NCBI GenBank assembly: GCA_048772705.1
Contig: JBLWGC010000230.1
Coordinates: forward strand, 62,001 to 126,000
DNA from: Leidyana gryllorum EB-2025a
Lineage: Eukaryota > Protista > Apicomplexa
Reading direction: 5' to 3'
Length of the DNA stretch: 64,000 nucleotides
Both the position numbers and the translations under genes were made by a program. Shown here piece after piece: positions 3,989-62,906 of the stretch. Position 1 is the stretch's first letter. The number at the start of each line of letters is the position of its first letter. The notes beneath the pieces were generated by a model. The model saw only the letters and a program-made list of their open reading frames with translations, was not told the DNA's origin and ran no database searches.

Positions 3989-5872
3989 ATGGAAGATCCA
4001 TATGGCCACTTCAACGTAGCTAACGACTATCTGTCGAGCTCGAATCTCACAACTTCAGCTGATAGCGAGGACACCGGGAGTCCTCTCCGCCACGCAATCG
4101 CGCTACGCCAAAACCACACACGCCTCCTATCAAACTTGCAACGCGAATGGGATGCAAGTGGAAGAAGAGGTAAGACATCACTGTTTCGTCTCTATGGATG
4201 CGGTCATCGTCCAGATTTGACTCTGTACACTTGGATTGAGCTCGATCGCCGCCTGCGCGAGGCTGAAGGTGAGACTCAACAGACACACTTTCTTTTAAAG
4301 GGCTAGCACGAATTGACAGGTCTCGGAGGCTGGTCAGGCCCCCCTGCGCTACGAGCGGCAGAAGCTTGGCACCGGATCGGTTGGTACCTGATGACTCTGT
4401 TATTCAAAAAGTCGGGAAAAGAAGCTGAAGAAGGCGGGGTCTTTCAACCGGCCAGTTACCCCTTGCTCCTGACTACTTTAGAGAAGCTGTATAGCTGCTA
4501 CCCTCAGATGACCTGTTTCTTAATGCCCATTCCGGTGCCTTTGGCACCGGAGAGGGTATCCACCTCGTCCAACGACTCTGCGATTAAGTCTTTTGCTTCC
4601 CGCGGCCCTCTCGCGTGGCTTCATCGGATTACACTACCACTGAATCCCGACTTGAAGACGTGTGTGTTGTGTTCTCATGGTACTGTACGGTGTCTCAAAG
4701 ACGATTCTGTTAAATTGCTGTTCACCAAGCACCTGGGTGTTCTGAGTCGACACATCGATCTGTTTGCCAGGGCCAAGGAAACTCCTCCATACGGCGGTGA
4801 TCTCTACACCCGATTTGTCGCTCACTTTGTGCTGCCATGGGTCTCAGAACGAGACATATCCAGTCTTTTCATTGGGAACGGTAGTGAGAAATACCAAGGC
4901 GTAGCGGAGGAGACACTGCACGCGATTTATGGTCTTTTGGAGGACTCGATTCGATACCTTAACCTATGGGCGGTCTTCTCGCCTTATCGCTCGGGATTGG
5001 CAGTGGACTATCCCTCTCTGCTGACCACGGTTCCGGTGACGTTGACAAACGCGCAAAGTGTGGACGGTTTGTTACCGCACCTGAGCGAGTTGGACGGGGT
5101 TCCCGCAGTGGACACCGCTGTTTGGATGTTGCTGCACTATGCCGTACTGATATGTTTCACTGCCTTCCGTCGCGGTTACGACATCAGTGCGAGGACAAAG
5201 TCCTATTTGGATTTGAAAGCGTATGCTTATGCTGACCCGCGTCAAGTGGCAGCCGTGCACAATCAAATTTGCAACTGGGCTACACGTCAACTGCTTTGTA
5301 CGCGCGTATTGCAGGCTCTCAGCGAGACGAACGGCACGACAGTAGACTCGGCAGCGTCGTTTCTGTGGACTTTCGGTCCGTCGGCCGAGGTGCGAGGGTC
5401 GTTGCGAGACGACAGATTATTGTACCAGAAAGGAAAGTATCGTTTCTGTACGCATCCTGTACATCGTCAGAAACGAGACATGGGCAGTCCCATCTACCGC
5501 GTACAGCCAGCATTAGCTCACAGCTTGTTTTCGAGTTCACGTTTCAATCGCGATCTGTGTGGTCGAATGCTGTGGGTACCTCAAAATGAGGTAAAGGACT
5601 GGCGTCAGACTCTCTTGTTCGCTTGGACTGACCGGGTTTTGAAGTTGGCAGAGTTGCATCAGGTGGTGGACTCATCAGCCGTGAATGAGTGCGTCACTGA
5701 TTTGGTCATGAGGGCCCAGCAGGTTATCACTGACCGAATCCAGTGGTTCGAAGGTACATATTCGCGAGAGTGCCAGAAACTGGTCCGAGGGATGCAGCCA
5801 GGAGCGTCGGCGCCGACTGGAATGCTACTTTTCGAACCAGCAGTGATAGCTATTATGGGATTGACAGTGTAG
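3989..5872 (+). CDS. Hypothetical protein (spliced; intron ~4269-4319)
   Basis: Long ORF 4313-5872 joined to an upstream exon by a GTGAGA..TTGACAG intron. No recognisable domain. Confidence 0.6.
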
Positions 5873-31692: not shown

Positions 31693-31766
31693 GATGGACC
31701 TCTCTGCACGGCTTTATTAAATTTTTTCGGCACTTGGTGAGGAGACAGCACGGCCAGCGTCCCATC

Positions 31767-33339
31767 ATGGCAAAGCGAGGTAGCCGAGACGCTGTTGGGG
31801 TCGCCAAGACGACTTTGAAGAAACGCAAGGTCGAGTCAGTGACCGCCGAGGTGTCGAGCAAAACTGACCAACCGCCCAAGGAGAAAAGTCCGGTATTTGC
31901 TCAAGACAGTCATACTGAGACCACCACTCAAGACAGTATCCTGTCATGTGATACCTTTGCATCTCTCGATATATGTGATCCCCTCAAACGGGCATTGGAG
32001 GCCATGCAGATGGTTCGAATGACTCAAATCCAGTGCTATGCTATTCCTAAACTTCTCGAAGGACGGGATTTACTCGGCTCTGCTAAGACGGGCTCGGGTA
32101 AAACCCTCGCCTTCGTAGTGCCGGCACTCGACTTGATGTACCGTGCTCGCGTCGAACCCAAGTTGGGGACTGTGGTATTGGTCCTCACCCCCACTCGCGA
32201 ACTGGCTATCCAAATCGGAGAGGTGGTTCGCGAAGTTGGCCAATTCGTCTCGCATACTTTCGGTACGATCATTGGAGGCAGCAAGAAGCGAACAGAGGCT
32301 GAGAAATTGAGCAAAGGCGTCAATCTGCTGGTCGCCACTCCCGGACGTCTCCTCGATCACATCCAGACCACCAAGGAGTTCACATACTCCAATCTGCAAA
32401 TGCTGATCATTGATGAGGCTGATCGAATGTTGGAACAGGGATTTGAGAGAGAGTTGACGGCAATCATCAAAGCTTTGCCAAAAAAGCGACAGACGGCTCT
32501 CTTCTCGGCAACGCAGAGTCCAAAGGTGGCAGATCTGATACGACTGTCAATGAAGGAACCCGTTTTGGTTGAGATCAAAGACGAACAGGCCACTGTCAAT
32601 GGACTACAACAGGGTTACATCATTTGCAGTGCGGAACAGCGCCTCGCTCTCCTCTTCAAACTTCTCAAAAAGAAGCAGCAGAAGAAAGAGAAGGTGATGG
32701 TCTTCTTCTCAAGTTGTGCCGCTGTTCAATTCTACGACGACCTCTTCAACTATCTCGACTTGAAGTGCACAAGTCTTCATGGGAAGAAGAAACAGGCCGC
32801 TCGAACCTCTGTTTACAATAACTTCTTGACTTCTGAGGTAAGAAGAAGTTTGTCTCGTCACTGTCGTTTCATCTTCTGTTTCCTCCTATCAGTCCGGTAT
32901 TCTTCTCTGTACGGGCGTCGCAGCTCGTGGTCTCGACTTCCCGAACGTCGAGTGGATTGTCCAATACGATCCCCCGGCCGAGGTCACCGAGTACATACAC
33001 CGAGTGGGAAGGACAGCCAGAGGCGATGGAGGAGTGGGCAGTGCTCTCCTCTTCCTGCTGCCCGAGGAGGTGGGTATCCTCGCTATGCTCCACCAACGGG
33101 GAGTCAAGGCTAAAGAGTACCGCGCCAATCTCAAAGACTTGCCAAAGATCTATGAATCTATCAGTCGTGTTGTGGCCAAGAATTTCCATCTCGCCCAAGG
33201 CGCCCGGGATGCGTACAAAGGTTTCATGCTGGCGTACAACTCCCACTCTCACAAGAATATATTCGATGTCAAAAAGTTGGACATCGTTCAAGTAGCCAAG
33301 TCGTTCGGTATGGCCGTGCCTCCCCGGGTGGATCTGTGA
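31767..33339 (+). CDS. HAS1: DEAD-box RNA helicase HAS1/DDX18; intron ~32838-32892
   Basis: AKTGSGKT, PTRELA, TPGRLLDH, DEAD, SAT, ARGLD, HRVGRTARG, and a HAS1-type C-terminus SHSHKNIFDV..VAKSFG..PPRVDL. Confidence 0.93.
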
Positions 33340-53735: not shown

Positions 53736-54690
53736 TTATTCCTCTTCTTCTTCTCTGGGGGTTGCTAACTCTGCCTCTCCTTCTTCCTCAAGGGCGGGCT
53801 CCTCGACATCCTCCCATTCACTACTTGGCTGTTCGGGGATCTCGATTTGAGACTGATCAGTGTTACAAAGAGGGCACAAGTTTGCACGGTGGAGCATCCG
53901 CGCGTGTAACTTCCGATTGCAATCCTACGGAGGAAATGTTAGATACCACGATTTTGCTCACCTCATGTATTGGGTGGCCGCAGACTCTCAGGATCACCAC
54001 TGGTCGAACAGAGTCAAACATTTCTTCGTGACAAACACAGCAAATGTTCATCATGGCTTGAGCTGTTTGTGAGAAGAAAGATTATCAAATCTCAGGTTCC
54101 CAGAGTAGACAATGACTTACGGATGCATTTGTGCTTCCCTTCGATTTGACGTGGATAACATGAACTGCACACCTTGCAGTGGAAATATTCCGATGCAGGC
54201 CCAACCCTGCAGATGCCACAGTCAGCGCAGTGATAAATCTGTTGAAGCGGCGCATTGATCAATTTAGGACGCGATTGTTTTCTCACTCACCTGTCGATTC
54301 TCCCGATCGTCCCACAAGTGGCAGATCGAGCAGTAGTACTGGGCGAACCTGATGAAGCATTTGCGACAGGTATCAACGGGGTCCTGAACGTATCCACAAT
54401 CTGAACATTCGATCTTCTTGATTTCGAAACGGTTCAATTTGCTGTCAAAGCATTCGTGTCTCCTTCAAACTCGAACAAACACACGAGACTCACTGTGGAT
54501 TATCCGACGTCTCATAATAAGCGTCATGACATAAGCGACATGGGAAGGTGACGTTACAGCACGGGGCGACTATCTTGCAATGACGAGGATAGTGCTCGCA
54601 GCCCGCGGCATGGGGCTCTGACGCTGGGGCCGCCGTCGGACTCGGTCGGCGTGAGCTCTTGAGACGCACAGGTCGCTCAGTTGCGAACAT
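53736..54690 (-). CDS. RCHY1: CHY zinc finger + RING E3 ligase (RCHY1/Pirh2-like)
   Basis: GCEHYPRHCKIVAPCC..CRLCHD, YHCADCGICRVG..FHCKVC, CCVCHEEMF..CGHPIH..CPLC. Confidence 0.88.
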
Positions 54691-54723
54691 ATAGCCTCCA
54701 AAAAAACTTTAAATGTCAACTCG

Positions 54724-55291
54724 ATGCAGTATGGATTGGATCAGGGGACTTTCTTCCGTCCCTTGCTGAACGTGACATGGCGAAAGGTGCTGAAGGCCCA
54801 AGTGATCCAAGATCTGAGTCAGGAAGTGTGGCTGGAAAAGTTTGCTGTGTATGAGAACCGACCTCCGTGCCGACAGGCTTTATTGGACTTGATGGATGAG
54901 TGAGTATCGAAACCGGAGGATGAAAGATTTACTTTAAAACAGTGTCGACAATGTCTGTTCCGCAGCGAATTTGACACTCAATCGTTGGGCGAGCGTGCTG
55001 GTGGCTGCGACGCCTGAAGAATGGCCAGTGTATCGATCACGTTTGGTATTGGGGCCCGAAACGGAGGGACAGCCGTGGGTACACATGGTGCGATGTCAAA
55101 AAGCCAAGACATTGTGGGCGATGGCTAAACTGTGGTGGTTGATAGGTGTGCATCCGGACATTCGTGAAGAGGACGAAAGGGCTAATGGTATGGACCCGAT
55201 GGCTCGGCTCGAGGGGTTACTACGTCAAAATGCCGACCTCCAAGAGATACAAGAAGTTGGTCGACGCTTGTTGACTGGGAACAGAGTGTGA
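54724..55291 (+). CDS. Hypothetical 174-aa protein, weak Gag capsid-NTD resemblance; intron 54900-54942
   Basis: A phase-2 GTGAGT..AAACAG intron restores the frame. Contains LLDLMDDVDNVCSAANLTLNRWASVLV. Confidence 0.55.
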
Positions 55292-55311
55292 AAACTTTTT
55301 GGTTGACTTCA

Positions 55312-56277
55312 ATGGAGGGGGAGAATGCTCACCCGCTGAGTCCTTTATCTTCAGGTAATTCGCCCAGGTCCGAAACGGACGCTGAGGAATGGAAGAATAG
55401 CCTGCGGTTGGGGAAATCCAAGGAGTGGCAACGAACACCTTACTTACACTCACGAGCTAACTCAGATCCTGACAATGTTTTCTTAGCGGCCGAGAAGGCC
55501 CTTTCCGAGGCCGGGCTGCCGGAATCGGAGTGGTGGAATGTTATTCTAAGCGAGCGGGCTGATCCCACCGCTAAAAGGAGGATGCTGGCTATCCAGGAGC
55601 AGTTGCAAGCGGAAGCCAAATCAGCCAACTTGACATACAGTACGCTACGTGATGCGTTTTTGCAACGATGGGGTGTTTTGGAACCCATAAATGCCTACGA
55701 CTGCGCGATGACTCGCCTCGAGTGCGACTCAGTCTCGGAGGCCTTGCTGACGTTCGAGCGGCTCCACAAACAATACCTCAGAGCTTGTGCTAGAGAAAAG
55801 GTCGACAGGCCGATTCCGGAAGACAGAATGGCATACATGTTCCGCGAAGCCCTGCCGGTCTTTGTCCGCGATCGGCTCACTGAGCACCTCAGGTTGATGC
55901 GCATCACCAACCCGTCGGTGTGTATGAGTTTGGTTCAATGCATTGAGGCTGCACATCTTGTTGAAGAGGAGTGCCTTCGGATGAGGGTCGATCCGCGAAA
56001 ACAGCAGCCGCAACCAGAAGATCCAGAGGAAGGGGAGGACTGGACTCCGTTGGTCGAAGAGGAGGAGGAAGAAGAGGGGGTGGTGGGAAGTGTCAAGCAG
56101 CGTAGTTCTGATACATCAACAGCGTCATCAGTGCGCAACAATAATGAGCGACGACAAGCTACCAAACGAGCTTGGTGGGAGATACAATCGGAACCTCCAC
56201 GCTGCTACCGCTGTGGAGGTACCGGACATAAAGCTTCTGTTTGCAACAGCCGCATCGTCAAGCGTCCGCACCAATAG
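55312..56277 (+). CDS. Ty3/Gypsy-type retrotransposon Gag-like protein (capsid + CCHC knuckle), no pol/LTR
   Basis: DPDNVFLAAEKALSEAGLPESEW, TYSTLRDAFLQRWG, DSVSEALLTFERL, PEDRMAYMFREALP, SLVQCIEAAHLVEE, and CYRCGGTGHKASVC (56203-56244). Confidence 0.75.
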   Translation: MEGENAHPLSPLSSGNSPRSETDAEEWKNSLRLGKSKEWQRTPYLHSRANSDPDNVFLAAEKALSEAGLPESEWWNVILSERADPTAKRRMLAIQEQLQAEAKSANLTYSTLRDAFLQRWGVLEPINAYDCAMTRLECDSVSEALLTFERLHKQYLRACAREKVDRPIPEDRMAYMFREALPVFVRDRLTEHLRLMRITNPSVCMSLVQCIEAAHLVEEECLRMRVDPRKQQPQPEDPEEGEDWTPLVEEEEEEEGVVGSVKQRSSDTSTASSVRNNNERRQATKRAWWEIQSEPPRCYRCGGTGHKASVCNSRIVKRPHQ

Positions 56278-56306
56278 TACAGTCAGTCACTTTTTTTGTG
56301 CCCACC

Positions 56307-59300
56307 ATGCCGCCCAAGGAGAATCTTGCGGACCTCCCTGCAAAGGACCGTGCGGCCTTCAAAGATGCCAACGTGAGGACTGGTTATCCCCTTTCCATAA
56401 CACTAACTCAACACAGAAAGCTTATACGGATGGCAAGTATCCCAAAGCGGCCAAGGCCTTGGACCTTTTGGTGAAGAAGCACCCAACATGCCTCGAGATC
56501 CTTTCTCTCCTCTGCCTCACTCTCCGCAACATCCCAGAACGAAAGGCGGAGGCAATGGAAGTCATCAAGACTGCCTTACGTATCAACATTCGTTCTGCCA
56601 TCGCCTGGCACGCAAAAGGATCCTACCACCGCATGGAGCAGGAGTATCAATTGGCCGTCGCCGCCTTCAAACAGGCTGTCCAGTGCGAACCACAAAACCA
56701 GCAGCTCCTCATAGACCTCGCCAGCTGTCTACTTATGACGCGCCAATACGAGCAGTTCTGCAAGACCTCCGAGACACTGTTGCAGAAATAGTAAGCCACT
56801 CTCCCACTCTGCACGCCACGCTTCTTCCTCCTGCAGTCAAATGGAAAAGAGATTCTATTTCGGTGTGGTATTCGCTCAGAGACTCGCCGGGCGGCCTGAA
56901 GAGGCGGCCGAGACACTGCTCAAGTGGTGGGAGCTTCCCTCCGAAGTGCTGGGAGAAACGACCCCGCAGATCAATACAGAACTGCGTTTGTATCTGGTGC
57001 GACTATTGGAGGAGTCAGGACAGTATGAGAGAGCCTGCAGTCATGTGACCACTGCTCTGGCGTTGGAGTCAGATTTCAAAGACCCCGTGGCAGCACAAAC
57101 GGCCATAGGACGACTCAATCTTCGACTAGGAAACTATGAAAAGGCCGCTGCAGCTTACAAGTGGGTGTTGTCTCTCCTCTCCCCTCCCACTTATCGCTCC
57201 TCTCCTCAGAGAACTCATCAAATCGCTTCCACAAAATATGGACTATTTGATCGGATACCTCATCTCTCAGCCGACACTCTCGGACCTGTTGCCGAATCCG
57301 TTCACTGAAGAGGGTGAGAAGCTGAAACCCTATTATCCCGATATCGTGACTAACTGCGGCGTCCGCAATGCTGATTGGTTGAGCTTCCCGGTCTCTGACC
57401 ACGCCACTGTGGACGAATTCGGACGAAGAATGGTCAAAGGGCGCCAGGAATCTTTTTGGTACAGAGGAGGCACATGGGAATATCTGTACAGCAATGACCT
57501 CAGTGTATCGGAGGCGCAAGAGGAGTTTGTCTTGGGGGTCGTAGAAGGTAAGAATCGCAGCCGTCTCCCCCTACCACAAGCTGTCACCCAGACTTACTCA
57601 AGTTTGTCGAAAAGACCACCTGTGACACCATCACCGCTCTGGCTCTGCCATTTTGCCGGCGGGAAGCGAGCTTCAAGCGCCAGGTTCGGTCACTTTTGAG
57701 CACTGGATTGAAGAAAGCTTCGCCAGCTGTGTTTTCCTCTATAAGATCTCTGGCAATGGCGGACAGCCAAAGAGTGGAGTGGCTCTACGAAGTTTTGGAC
57801 GAGCTCGTTGCTGAACTGGCTGAGAACAATCCCCTCGTCAAGTGGCTTGGTGCCACCATCAAAGCCGAACACGTGTGCTACGAGAAGCGAGACGGCGAGA
57901 AAGCTCTGCAAATGGTGTCGGAAGCTGTCGAAGCGATCCCCACCTTTGTCGAAATTGCCGAAGTCAAGAGCCAAATGGAAGCGTATATGGCCCGATTCGA
58001 GGATGCTGTTCAGACGTTGGATAAGGCTCGAAGTCTCGACAGAGCCGATCGCTACCTGAACGATAAGACTGTATTAGCTGTTCTAGAAACTGGCGATTAC
58101 GAGAAGGCCGAGAAGTTGGCTCGCACCTTTCAGTCCGCATCGGAGTTGAAGGACAAGGGGAGTGTTTTGGACTTACAGAATATGATGTAAGGAGAATCGC
58201 TTGGCGTTTGAAAATGATTGCTCCCTCTTCTGCAGATTCGATTACGCCTTCATTCAAGCGCACATGGCGAATGGAAACTGGCGTCAGGCAGCGGTGCGGT
58301 TGGATCGGATGTGGACACGGATCAATGATCTCCGGGTTGACTCGAACAACTTTTTCCTCTATACCCTCCGTCGGGGTGGTCTGAGAGGTTTGACTGATTA
58401 CCATTTGGTGATGTGCAAATTACCACAGCACAAGTGAGAGTTTCACTGGCTCGCTTTTGAATTCAACACTCAATTATTATAGGTACATGATGAAGGCTGG
58501 TGTCCGGTTGGTAGAGCTGCTGACAGCGCTCAAGAATCAAGCAATCAAGTTCAGGCCCGTGGGTGAAGAGGGCAAGATGCCAGAATACGCCCACCCGTAC
58601 TTGGTGGATCAGAATGAAGCGGAGTGGATGGCCAAGGCGAGAAAAATCCTCATCCAGCTAAGAGATGAAGCAAAGACCGGAAACTATCAGTCCAATGCGA
58701 GTCTGTACAGATTCTTCGTACGCGTCGGTGAGTCAGTCAGTCAGTCGACGACCAGTCTCTCTCTACATCAACCATTTCTTCGTGCGTGCAGACGAGTTGA
58801 ACGTTGAGAACGTAGGGACAGCGCTGAGGAATCTGTGGTCTTTGACGGGGGGACGCATCGGGCACCCGAAGCTGTTGCCTTTCTTGCTGCACGCCTGTCT
58901 GGTGCTTCGAGAGCAGCTCGCTGAGGTTTTAAAAGAGCTCCTCGGAGACAGAGACGTGGATGAGGTGGTGAAAGAGATGGAAGAGCAGCTGACTCTACGG
59001 GCTCAAAGTCGGTGGATAAAGGACCGCATGGCAGGTGGGAGTCGTCTTCTCTATATTTACTATTTGACCTATGGCAGTCATAAAATCGTGGGAGCTGTGT
59101 GGGAGGGAATGCTACTATGGGGGGGTGTCAGAGAAGTGGGTGAAGAAGTGTGAAACACTTCTCGATGAGTCGTGCAAGGTGCCGCTGAGCGACGCACCGA
59201 TTAGCTTGCAACGGGCGGCTCGACGGATTCGGTGGCTCGCAGTGGGTCTTCCGTCCCTCTCTCCCAACGCTAAGCAGACAGACTTCTCGCAACGTTTCTT

Positions 59301-59322: not shown

Positions 59323-61120
59323 TTACATCGGGGACTGATAGACAGAGGAGGCCATGAGATCGCAATATTGAGCACCGTTCTGGGCTGACGACGACTCATC
59401 AGTGGTCCTCAGGTTCTGCAATTCCTCTTTAGCACCCCGTTCAATGTCATTCTGCGCCAATAACAACAAATCCAGCCATCACATCTCACCGACTCACCAT
59501 CATGTTATTGAGGAGAGGCGAGATTTCATTGTCACTAGCTAACTTCTCCAGTACGGCAAGTAATATTTCCATGCCTGCAGCGGCCTTGACGGCGTGCTTC
59601 TTATGTAATTGAGACTTCACTCGGTTGCCACTTGGTTCCACCAACCTCGGCATCTGGTTTGCGCTTTCCGTTGCCGTCCGCGCGGTTGCGGCCCTGCGAT
59701 AATGACACACACTCTCAAAAAGATCCGACCTCAAACACACTTACGAAGAGGGTTCTGCCAACGGCATGGCCAAAAATACGGCCAAACAGTCTCGCGGGGA
59801 CCTCACGGGGTTGCCCGGTATACAGCTTACGCATTTGGACACCGCCAGCCAATCGGGGCCGTGACTCTCTATAGCGTCGAATAGAATCGAGATTTGAGAT
59901 TCGCTCCAGTTTGACACCCCGCCGCTCAAGTGCAGAGCGGGAAGTGTCACCTTGAGCAGACTCTGGTTGTACGGTGCTTCGCGAGCACATTCGCAACACC
60001 ACACTGCAGGCTTCAGCTGAGGCAAAGGCAGTGCGCCTCCGTACACAGCGGGCGATAAGACGTAGAAAGAATAGAGACAGATCCGGTCGCAGCTGGTACA
60101 AGTGGGGGTGCGAGACCAATGAGATCTCAGCTCCTCCTTTAAGCGTTGACTCTGTAACGCAGTGCCACCAACGGCTGTGGCCCCATAGCTGGGACTCGCT
60201 GGCCGCAGAGCAAAGTTGACCAGTCGGTTACGTTCAAGAAAACTGAGAACTCGGATCAGAGCGGCCAAATCTCCATCTGTTAGATCACGACAAAGTCGAC
60301 AAATGTCCAATGTGCTGCCAATCTTACCGCAATATTTTCGGCACTCGGCCAGCGTAAGTCGAGTGAGGGGGTTCAATCTGTACGCATCGATGAGAGTATT
60401 ACGCAGCGCCACATAGGCGAGATTATCTCGGTCGCCTTCCTCGACTTGGGAACAGGCTTTGAGACCCGAAAAAGACACCTTTAATTCATCAACTTCCTCC
60501 TGTGATATACCCTGCGCCTGGAAACCGGGACAGGGAGGCATTGGTGGGGGAGGCTGGCCGGCTAAGGCCTCGCGCAACCGGGCCGTCTGTGAGCCAGTGG
60601 CCACAACAGGTACTCGAACCGACGGTTGGACCATGGGCTGCATTGGCATGACAGCTTGTGGCGGTACCCGCATCCTCTCGTCGCCCATTTCGACCGGCAT
60701 GGGGGTACGCTGAACAGTGGGGGTAGCTCCCTGTCCCGAGAACTGTTGGGTAAGGTGTTTTGGCGGTCGGCCTCGTCCCTTCACGGGAGGTGTGGGGGGT
60801 AAGGATGCTTCTGCCATAGCGGTATCATCTTCTAATACGGCTTCCTGCTCAGCTTTCACGTCCTCGTGTTTGAGCGCCGAAATCACGTCCTGTTTGACCG
60901 TTTCGGCTAACGAGGAGCCCATTACAGCCTGTACGTCCTCCTCTGCTACATCCGAGATGACGTCATCGGCACTTAGAGTCGGCATCTGGTCAGCAGCAGC
61001 ATCTAGAGGGCGAATCTCAGATACTCTAACATCTTCAATATCTCCGACTTGAGCGCTAGGCCGGCATGAAAAATGCACAAAAGTAGGTATTGCTTGCCCT
61101 TCAAGTGGTACTTGGGCCAT
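59323..61120 (-). CDS. SWI3: SWI3/SMARCC-type chromatin remodelling subunit (AT-hook, SWIRM, ZZ-like, SANT)
   Basis: KGRGRPPK, YVALRNTLIDAYRLNP..LTLAECR..GDLAALIRVLSFLERNRLVNF, CxxC pairs, WSESQISILFDAIESHGPDW..CLAVFLAMP. Confidence 0.82.
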
Positions 61121-61152
61121 TTCGAGTACCTTGAGCTAAAAAAAAAACAGAA
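61121..61152. promoter_or_regulatory. Putative minimal bidirectional promoter/initiator with A10 tract
   Basis: 32 nt between the SWI3 and SOF1 ATGs. Confidence 0.5.
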
Positions 61153-62906
61153 ATGAAGGTTAAGGTCCTGGCTCGGCCACCCGACCTCTATGCTGCTACC
61201 CACCAAGGGCAACGCAAGCCACTCTTTCGGAGTCATGACAAGCGTCTCCACCCCTTCGCTCAAGAGAGAGAATATCAAAGAGCTTTGGTAGCTGTCAAGA
61301 TGGATCGCATTTTCGCCAAGCCATTAGTCAATGTTTTTCATGGCCATCGCGATACCGTCACGGCTATGGCTCGCTGCCGACAAGCAGTCTACGATATGTT
61401 CACTGGAGCGGGTGATGGAGAGATTCGTTTCTGGAACCTAAGCAAAAAAGACTGTGTCCGCAGTGTTGCCGGTGCGCATGAAGGTGCCATCGAAGGATTG
61501 GCTCTGAGCAATGATGACAAATATCTCTTCTCATGCGGCCGCGATCACAAAGTCAAGCAATGGCCGGTGCAAAAGTACTTTGATATCCTACGTACTGACG
61601 ATAGCCAGATGGAGGATGGTGGAAATCTGATCAGAGATTCCGACTACTACGTCGACTCTGCCTTGAAGACAGAGGTCACCCCAGCTGCTGTCTTCACCAC
61701 CAGCGGGCCATTGACGGGTATCGATCATCACGAGGAGGCTTCACAGTTCGGTAAGTGGATTTCGACATCGAGCTTTGGGGCATTGGTTGCATTTCAGCCT
61801 GTTGCGGAGAAAAAGTTTATATATTCGATGAGAGACGCTCCAGCCCTTTGCACGAGTTCACATGGGGATGCGAGCATTTCTACTCTGTCCGCTGGTCACA
61901 ATCGGAACCGAATCTGTGTCTGGCCACTGCCGGAGACAACTCGGTGATGTTATTCGGTGAGTTCACTAAAAGAAGGGTGACTCTTTGAGACTTTTCGCCT
62001 ACGTTCAGATATTCGCCAAGCTGAAGGATTGCAAAAAGTCACATTGGATATGAGGTCGAATGCATCCGCCTGGAACCCAATGAAACCTTTCAACTTTGTG
62101 GTTGCCAATGAGGACTCGAATTTGTATACTTTCGATATTCGCAAGTTCACCAAAGCTCTTCGAATCCATCATGGCTTTGTCAACGCAGCGTAAGCGGTAC
62201 TTTGTCCTCAATAATGATATCTGATGATGGTGTTACAGACTGGATGTGGACTTTAGTCCCACGGGTCAGGACATCTGTGCGGGTTCTCACGATCAGACTG
62301 TCCGCATATGGAAAGAAGATCAGCCACGATCACGGGAGATGTACCACAATCGCCGACAGCAAATGTAAGTGTGCCGCCAAGTTGCACTCGTCAGAAACTA
62401 TTTCTCGTCTCACAGAGTCACGAGTACTCGCTTCAGCGGGGATGGCCGCTACGTGCTGAGTGGGTCTTCGGATATGAACATACGAGTGTGGAAGTCGAAT
62501 GCATCTGAGATTTTGGGACCCGTAAGTGACAAGATTGCTTTCCAAACGTCAACAATGTCTCGCCTCACAGAAAAACCGCCGTGAAACAGCTGCTGTGCTT
62601 TACCGCGAGAAGTTAAAGGAGCGATATGCGGAACACGCGGAGATCAAACGCATAGCCAATGGCCGCAAAGTACCGAGATTCATCAAACGTCGTGCTGAGA
62701 TGCGAGTCCAAGCGACTCAGAAGGAAAGCAAGAAGGAAGCCAACAGGCGGGCCCGAAGCGATCCGAGCGCCTCCACCAAGAAATTAAAGGAATCGATGAT
62801 CCGAACAGTCGAGGTGGAAGATGCTCCAATGAAACCAGGCAAAGGGCGTCGTGGCAGTAAGAAAAAGCAGCAGGTTGGGTCTGATGCCGAGGAGGGAGCT
62901 GAGTGA
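61153..62906 (+). CDS. DCAF13: WD40 protein SOF1/DCAF13, multi-exon
   Basis: MKVKVLAR..LHPFAQEREYQRALVAVKMDRIFAKP..GHRD, and C-terminal YREKLKERYAEHAEIKRIA. Confidence 0.95.

Follow-up and report, generated by a model that had tools for sequence, protein, structure and literature searches.

A 321-amino-acid (aa) protein is encoded at positions 55312 to 56277 of a 64-kb stretch of contig JBLWGC010000230.1 (hereafter "the window", by which we mean the whole 64,000 nucleotides (nt) that were analyzed), and its open reading frame (ORF) is probably a host gene descended from the gag gene of a Ty3/Gypsy-type retrotransposon, i.e., of an element in which gag is followed by protease (PR), reverse transcriptase (RT), RNaseH and integrase (IN). 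Judging from sequence comparisons, we assign this reading a probability of about 0.8. A Gag ancestry had been proposed from the letters of this DNA alone (in the following, the original prediction), and it is now supported by homologs that lie directly 5' of a PR-RT-RNaseH-IN pol gene, by a capsid-like fold and by a CCHC zinc knuckle. The gene and the parts of its product are arranged as follows:

55312..56277, + strand: Gag-derived host gene, an intact 321-aa ORF (ATG at 55312, TAG stop at 56275-56277)
55312..55461, + strand: N-terminal Ser/Pro-rich region, predicted to be disordered (residues 1-50)
55462..55986, + strand: capsid-like all-helical core (residues 51-225, with an N-lobe at about 51-120 and a C-lobe at about 125-225)
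55987..56202, + strand: acidic low-complexity linker with a Glu run, followed by a basic helix (residues 226-297)
56203..56244, + strand: single zinc knuckle CX2CX4HX4C, a nucleocapsid remnant (C298, C301, H306, C311)

The reading frame is uninterrupted exactly where it had been proposed, and a GTG-extended form of it begins at 55288. The capsid motifs quoted in the original prediction (DPDNVFLAAEKALSEAGLPESEW, TYSTLRDAFLQRW, SVSEALLTFERL, PEDRMAYMFREALP and SLVQCIEAAHLVEE) and the acidic run can all be read directly in the ORF, as can the terminal knuckle with its predicted spacing. In the family alignment described below, most of these motifs coincide with columns that vary little or not at all (D54, F57, Y109, L112, R113, L117, G121 and P125, and further E143, L151, R157, Y175, F177, A180 and P182). 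For the stretch that had been called a motif like the major homology region (MHR) of retroviral capsids, the comparison gives a mixed picture. E143, L151 and R157 are invariant in the family and roughly in the place expected of an MHR, where the C-lobe of the capsid domain (CA) begins; their spacing departs from the canonical Q-G-x2-E-x7-R, and R150 varies among family members.

The ancestry of the protein is revealed by the genomic position of its relatives. A phmmer search against 1.84 billion representative proteins, run without a length window so that fusions and fragments were within reach, found one close relative (P0001, about 85-86% identity) and four remote ones (E = 5e-10 to 8e-4), and a profile search added seven more family members. 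None of the relatives found by either search has a name or a Pfam domain. A family member lies directly 5' of an ORF of 1114-1189 aa in the four contigs L003, L006, L008 and L010. This downstream ORF carries RVT_1, RT_RNaseH, Integrase_H2C2 and rve, i.e., the Ty3/Gypsy order, in L003, L006 and L010 (with a weak Asp_protease match in L003 besides), and in L008 it aligns with the L003 pol at about 51% identity along about 890 aa. Altogether, pol follows directly after gag in all 7 distinct contigs that extend at least 400 nt downstream. When the host pair (the window protein and P0001) was aligned by hhalign with only the pol-linked or full-length members of the family, the two profiles matched with 98.1% probability (E = 6.4e-14) at residues 36-214, covering 171 columns.

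The nucleocapsid part fits the same descent. The pol-linked Gags have two knuckles, the second of which aligns with the host knuckle; the first occupies the region equivalent to the host linker and is missing from the host gene. A comparison of the family profile with CA, spacer peptide 1 and nucleocapsid of HIV-1 (CA-SP1-NC) gives E = 3.5e-5 via the double knuckle, and a phmmer search of the single protein against PDB sequences returned only noise at the level of the knuckle.

We obtained a structural model with AlphaFold2 (AF2) on the 13-sequence family alignment; a model from the single sequence was unusable (mean predicted local distance difference test score (pLDDT) of 44), and only the alignment-based one was taken. 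Its mean pLDDT is 71, and the core at residues 50-190 is all-helical with a pLDDT of 85-93. Among 350,542 PDB chains, the top Foldseek match of this model is the PNMA2 capsid (probability 0.96-0.97, template modeling (TM) score 0.48-0.50), followed by Arc, Copia, the CA of bovine leukemia virus (BLV), dArc1, Ty3, dArc2 (TM score 0.55) and the C-terminal CA domain of PEG10, so that capsids hold most of the top ranks despite weak E-values. Among viral models (BFVD), the best match is an endogenous retrovirus Gag (E = 3.1e-4), and caulimovirid coat proteins and polyproteins come after it. Support for a two-lobed all-alpha capsid-like fold of the modeled host protein is moderate because the underlying alignment is shallow. 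Of the checks that had been suggested, the structure search comes out in favor of a capsid protein, with capsids dominating the matches, but curated profiles do not: zf-CCHC, which is the only Pfam match of the host ORF, stays below threshold (E = 0.0026, 18.2 bits against a cutoff of 20.8 bits).

Outside the core, the model assigns a pLDDT of 44-53 to residues 1-30 and of 68-76 to residues 31-50. The linker falls below 50 at residues 238-278 and has a helix at 276-291.

That the ORF serves the host is indicated by its conservation in a second species. P0001 is an intact ortholog (about 85% aa identity) encoded on L001, a 1469-bp contig of a sequencing run that is colinear with positions 55193-56619 of the window at 75% DNA identity. 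L001 comprises the tail of the upstream ORF with its TGA, a spacer, the whole gag gene with the same start and stop (L001 158-1123, compared with 55312-56274 of the window), a 30-nt spacer, and exon 1, intron and exon 2 of the downstream gene NAA15. The 44-nt NAA15 intron has diverged to about 53% identity. L001 therefore stems from the genome of another species in which these genes are arranged alike. No further ortholog was found in the databases searched.

In a pairwise Nei-Gojobori comparison of the two gag genes, the proportion of nonsynonymous differences (pN) is 0.086 and that of synonymous differences (pS) is 0.746, which amounts to saturation of synonymous sites; the upper bound that bootstrapping sets on dN/dS is about 0.06. 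The two species differ at 14/8/47% of first/second/third codon positions in gag and at 16/9/45% in NAA15 exon 2 and, as far as these patterns go, the Gag-derived protein is constrained as strongly as its housekeeping neighbor. The proposed co-option by the host is thus supported, with the same site kept in one further species, strong purifying selection and, in this pairwise comparison, a dN/dS far below 1.

Constraint extends over the whole protein. Residues 1-30 are identical at 29 of 30 positions between the two species, and the linker is kept in the sister species except for small indels. The pS of the N-terminal region is 0.61 and thereby below that of the remainder of the gene. Values of gag pS in sub-regions reach or exceed saturation (0.75-0.83), which may point to a change of codon usage from one species to the other besides age.

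The gene stands alone between closely packed host genes:

53863..54690, - strand: RCHY1/Pirh2-like CHY-zinc-finger gene with several exons, divergent from the next gene
54724..55291, + strand: putative small two-exon gene (exon 54724-54899, 43-nt GT..AG intron, exon 54943-55291; the splice model is inferred)
55292..55311, + strand: 20-nt spacer from the stop of the upstream ORF to the gag ATG, with the A-run/T-run AAAACTTTTT
56278..56306, + strand: 29-nt spacer from the gag stop to the NAA15 ATG, with a T7 run
56307..56372, + strand: exon 1 of NAA15 (NatA auxiliary subunit), from direct reading and the L001 alignment
56373-56416, + strand: 44-nt GT..AG intron of NAA15, with later exons to at least about 58800

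Neither pol nor any other remnant of element DNA was found in the window, nor was a second gag copy, and no direct or inverted repeats fit to be long terminal repeats (LTRs) lie within 12 kb of gag; neither an Rfam nor a tRNA scan gave a match in the window. The claim of a stand-alone gene was accordingly well founded, with host ORFs 20 nt upstream and 29 nt downstream and with the NAA15 ATG at 56307, precisely at the proposed distance of 29 nt from the gag stop. NAA15 itself is identified by matches of its downstream exons, searched one by one, to NatA_aux_su (E = 9e-20) and to TPR families. Of the proposed order RCHY1-gag-NAA15, the downstream half is correct, but RCHY1 is not the direct upstream neighbor since the putative small + strand gene intervenes. 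The RCHY1-like gene has a zf-CHY match (E = 2.5e-8) on its exon 54490-54690. The small gene, which ends 20 nt before the gag ATG, has no Pfam match (its two exons were searched separately) and no similarity to elements. Its tail shares the TGA with L001 and differs from it at 10 first, 6 second and 19 third codon positions (of 32 in each class), a substitution pattern that looks coding-like.

Both spacers around gag have counterparts in the second species. The 20-nt spacer is kept in L001 with a 2-nt indel, and the first 24 nt after the gag stop are identical at 22 of 24 positions (L001 1127-1156, where the spacer is 30 nt long). This near-invariance of the gag-NAA15 spacer, despite synonymous saturation and about 53% intron identity, makes it look like a constrained non-coding element that could be a promoter, a terminator or a translational signal. 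A frameshift or readthrough fusion of Gag and NAA15 was considered and rejected: there is no slippery site before the stop, and the frame relation of the two genes is not conserved because the spacer is longer in L001 (30 nt) than in the window (29 nt).

Very short intergenic distances appear, from the layout of the window, to be a property of the host genome. The divergent ATGs of the RCHY1-like and the small gene are 33 nt apart (54690-54724), and those of a SWIRM/Myb gene and a WD40 gene are 32 nt apart (61120-61153), each pair across an A/T run. Such proximity would imply very compact bidirectional promoters and very short 5' untranslated regions (UTRs). A T-run of at least 4 nt occurs at -28 to -6 before 11 of the 39 long-ORF ATGs (28%) compared to 5.3% of all ATGs, and the gag ATG is preceded by such a T-run. 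Sharing this start context with host genes, gag is probably transcribed on its own; it would have acquired the local context and be expressed with a tiny 5' UTR, a conclusion drawn indirectly from the DNA.

The pentamer ACTTT is found exactly 18 nt before three consecutive ATGs (54706-54726, 55294-55314 and 56289-56309). As a specific motif, ACTTT-N13-ATG is borderline (5 matches with 1.9 expected, and 4 of 100 shuffles reach 5), and the broader T-run enrichment is the safer statement. Either may represent an initiator-like core promoter element.

The elements that carry the relatives of the host gene form a rare family, seen in one soil metagenome, one ENA assembly and a few sequencing runs; a metagenome scan with the closer subset retrieved 4 loci, all from one soil metagenome. 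Two of the runs with this element family share the accession series of the sister species, and L003 and L004 are related elements with intact gag and pol ORFs from runs of that species' sequencing project. Host gag is 20-30% identical to the sampled element Gags. The parent elements encode gag and pol in two separate ORFs, and pol, which is in the -1 frame, starts 0-68 nt after gag at the following junctions:

L003 1570-1580: gag/pol junction of a parent element
L010 1516-1526: gag/pol junction of a parent element
L006 1388-1457: gag/pol junction of a parent element
L008 1664-1697: gag/pol junction of a parent element

In two of these elements, the gag TGA overlaps the pol ATG (TGATG), which suggests a mechanism of termination and reinitiation, and in the other two pol opens 32-68 nt downstream. 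L006 and L010, which stem from k=141 metagenome assemblies, have identical 141-nt ends (1-141 / 5540-5680 and 1-141 / 5042-5182, respectively) and hence circular assembly paths, as expected of a collapsed LTR pair, a tandem array or circular element DNA; no LTR was delimited in them.

An apicomplexan-like host, as proposed originally, is a reasonable assignment. The best named matches of the DDX18/HAS1 helicase encoded in the window (31734-33113) are those of Besnoitia, Eimeria, Cyclospora, Cardiosporidium, Cryptosporidium, Porospora and Selenidium at 54-62% identity, among them coccidia and gregarines. In the helicase tree, the host joins no named genus: the window sequence sits beside a gregarine on a long branch, and the tree was flagged by a long-branch warning. 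It clusters with assemblies from sequencing runs (contigs of P0013, P0016 and P0017) at up to 66% identity. These results go as far as an apicomplexan-like, fast-evolving host. In the same tree, a DDX18-like sequence of Danaus plexippus (P0031, LOC133320728) groups with alveolates and apart from other Lepidoptera; this entry is probably an apicomplexan parasite sequence inside an insect assembly. Concerning the element, the Gag tree did not identify a donor lineage among the sampled element Gags. The long branch of the host pair in this tree therefore means that the donor lineage is unsampled, that the co-option is old, or both.

Several observations weigh against a co-opted Gag. No Gag or capsid family of Pfam matches any of the 13 family members, including the element-borne ones, at E <= 10, and zf-CCHC alone appears, weakly; a match to a curated Gag family is the usual criterion for annotation rather than a biological one. 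The best Foldseek E-value in the PDB is 0.075, from a model built on no more than these 13 sequences. In the Gag tree, the host pair forms a very long branch outside an unresolved cluster of element Gags. The evolutionary evidence comes from one ortholog on a contig of about 1.5 kb, and selection from a single pairwise comparison with saturated dS. Copy number (one copy) was seen within the 64-kb window only, and with spacers as short as 20 nt and 29 nt the mode of transcription is ambiguous. Finally, the loss of a knuckle and the gain of an acidic run could have changed the role of the protein in nucleic-acid binding or assembly.

In the history that we propose, an element inserted between the small host gene and NAA15. 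Gag is all that is left of it: pol and any LTRs are gone, and so is one nucleocapsid knuckle, the first of two. Purifying selection has held the remaining ORF intact at the same site in at least two species that diverged to synonymous saturation. Its product has kept an all-helical capsid-like core with two lobes, followed by a flexible acidic linker and a single CCHC knuckle. The conservation of lobes, linker, knuckle and disordered N-terminus suggests that self-association and nucleic-acid binding persist, and the protein may self-associate via its capsid lobes and bind RNA via the knuckle and its basic flanks. The result, in our tentative view and at slightly less than even odds, would be an oligomeric RNA-binding particle or chaperone. 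By analogy from the model, closed RNA-containing capsids like those of Arc, PNMA2 or PEG10 are conceivable but unlikely.

The alternative that survives best accepts the co-option and gives the protein another job. As a restriction factor, it would enter the particles of related Ty3/Gypsy elements by co-assembly, poison them and so help keep a compact genome free of transposons. Fv1, enJS56A1 and Ty1 p22 are examples of such poisoning by co-assembly, and Fv1 and Ty1 p22 are likewise Gag-derived proteins that are kept by or act for the host. Both capsid lobes, and with them the surfaces needed for co-assembly with an element Gag, are kept in the host protein; L003 and L004 place related intact elements in the sequencing project of the sister species, and no element was seen in the window. 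Yet restriction factors usually evolve fast or under positive selection, as Fv1 does, and the strong purifying selection on host gag, constrained as it is like NAA15, fits poorly with this. Co-assembly is also doubtful at 20-30% identity to the sampled element Gags, and we regard this function as quite unlikely.

Another alternative ties the gene to its downstream neighbor. Gag and NAA15, perhaps together with the small gene, would share a polycistronic transcript that reuses the coupling of gag to pol, and the function of the protein would be linked to N-terminal acetylation. The three + strand ORFs with gaps of merely 20 and 29 nt would suit this arrangement, as would the nearly invariant spacer past the gag stop and the fact that NAA15 lies in the -1 frame relative to gag in the window, just like pol in the elements. 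However, the frame relation is lost in the second species (29 compared to 30 nt), there is no slippery heptamer before the stop, and equally short ATG-to-ATG gaps (33 and 32 nt) separate divergent gene pairs, and each ATG has a T-run of its own. The pattern fits tightly packed independent promoters, and a shared transcript is highly unlikely.

It is scarcely tenable that a recent insertion left the ORF behind as a decaying solo-gag remnant, or that the ORF is a non-autonomous element made of gag alone: other copies may exist beyond the 64 kb inspected, but an ORF that is intact at the same site in two species with saturated synonymous sites and a pN of 0.086 excludes a recent truncated insertion or decaying remnant, and there are no LTRs or terminal repeats, with host genes 20 and 29 nt away. 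Equally little remains of the idea that the protein is not Gag-derived, being an unrelated helical host protein with a CCHC knuckle by chance or convergence or a host gene captured by elements, for which one may cite the missing Pfam Gag match, the weak PDB fold E-values and the long branch of the host pair, but against which stand the hhalign match to the gag-position proteins of seven elements (E = 6e-14 over 171 columns), the dominance of capsids in two independent fold libraries and the succession of helical core, linker and knuckle, which is that of a Gag.

A co-opted gag, the reading that we prefer, has well-studied parallels in animals, where Gag co-option gave rise to the Arc, PEG10, PNMA and RTL genes. 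PNMA2 and other mammalian PNMA genes are likewise stand-alone Gag-derived host genes with a two-lobed capsid, and two PNMA2 structures (8rb3 and 8uyo) are the best fold matches of our model in the PDB. There is no detectable sequence similarity between PNMA2 and the host gene, and assembly is proven for PNMA2 whereas the host protein is known from sequence and model; to our knowledge, PNMA2 has no CCHC knuckle. Arc, dArc1 and dArc2 are likewise domesticated Ty3/Gypsy Gags with the N- and C-lobes of CA (fold matches 6gse, 6s7y and 6taq), of which dArc1 keeps a zinc knuckle. Arc is not orthologous to the host gene, and its capsids carry mRNA between animal cells, unlike the setting here of a unicellular parasite-like protist. 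PEG10 and the RTL genes, derived from sushi-ichi elements, are Gag-derived as well, and the retained CCHC knuckle of PEG10 binds RNA (its C-terminal CA domain is the fold match 7lga). PEG10 keeps a protease and a -1 frameshift, whereas the host gene has neither a pol remnant nor a frameshift signal. No animal Gag-derived gene (Arc, PNMA or RTL) is among the sequence matches of our phmmer and profile searches. Since the host gene has no sequence kinship to Arc, PNMA, PEG10 or the Crtg genes described next, it would represent an independent co-option event.

The one systematic survey, which covered 2,011 eukaryotes, recorded 14 deep gag co-options (Crtg genes), all of them in animals, plants or fungi, and its authors named the under-sampling of protists as a caveat (Wang & Han 2021, PMC8321522). 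The features by which Crtg genes were recognized are likewise found here: the ORF is intact and consists of gag alone, it has an ortholog in another species, and its protein is under purifying selection. Protists are absent from the 14 cases, however, and the conservation shown for the host gag covers two species, not levels above the family. In Apicomplexa, Ty3/Gypsy elements have been described from Eimeria (chromovirus-like), avian Plasmodium and Ascogregarina (PMC5880244). These elements belong to the same superfamily and broad host group and have a CCHC-bearing Gag, but they are mobile or decaying with pol and LTRs, in contrast to a gag-only gene in a conserved host context. Our literature search turned up no co-opted gag in Apicomplexa, and the host gene is therefore a candidate for the first Gag co-option outside animals, plants and fungi. 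A bolder version, in which this first co-option in a protist (Alveolata) yields RNA-packaging capsid-like particles that move parasite RNA between parasites or into host cells, is decidedly unlikely.

Genes of this kind escape annotation, as neither Pfam nor a named homolog marks the host gag. With a Gag-only gene that is constrained and syntenic in an apicomplexan-like lineage, Gag co-option would reach a fourth major group of eukaryotes, one with compact, transposon-poor genomes in which one would least expect an element gene to be kept. With its two lobes and one knuckle, the 321-aa protein is also small and tractable enough to ask whether selection keeps capsid assembly after co-option.

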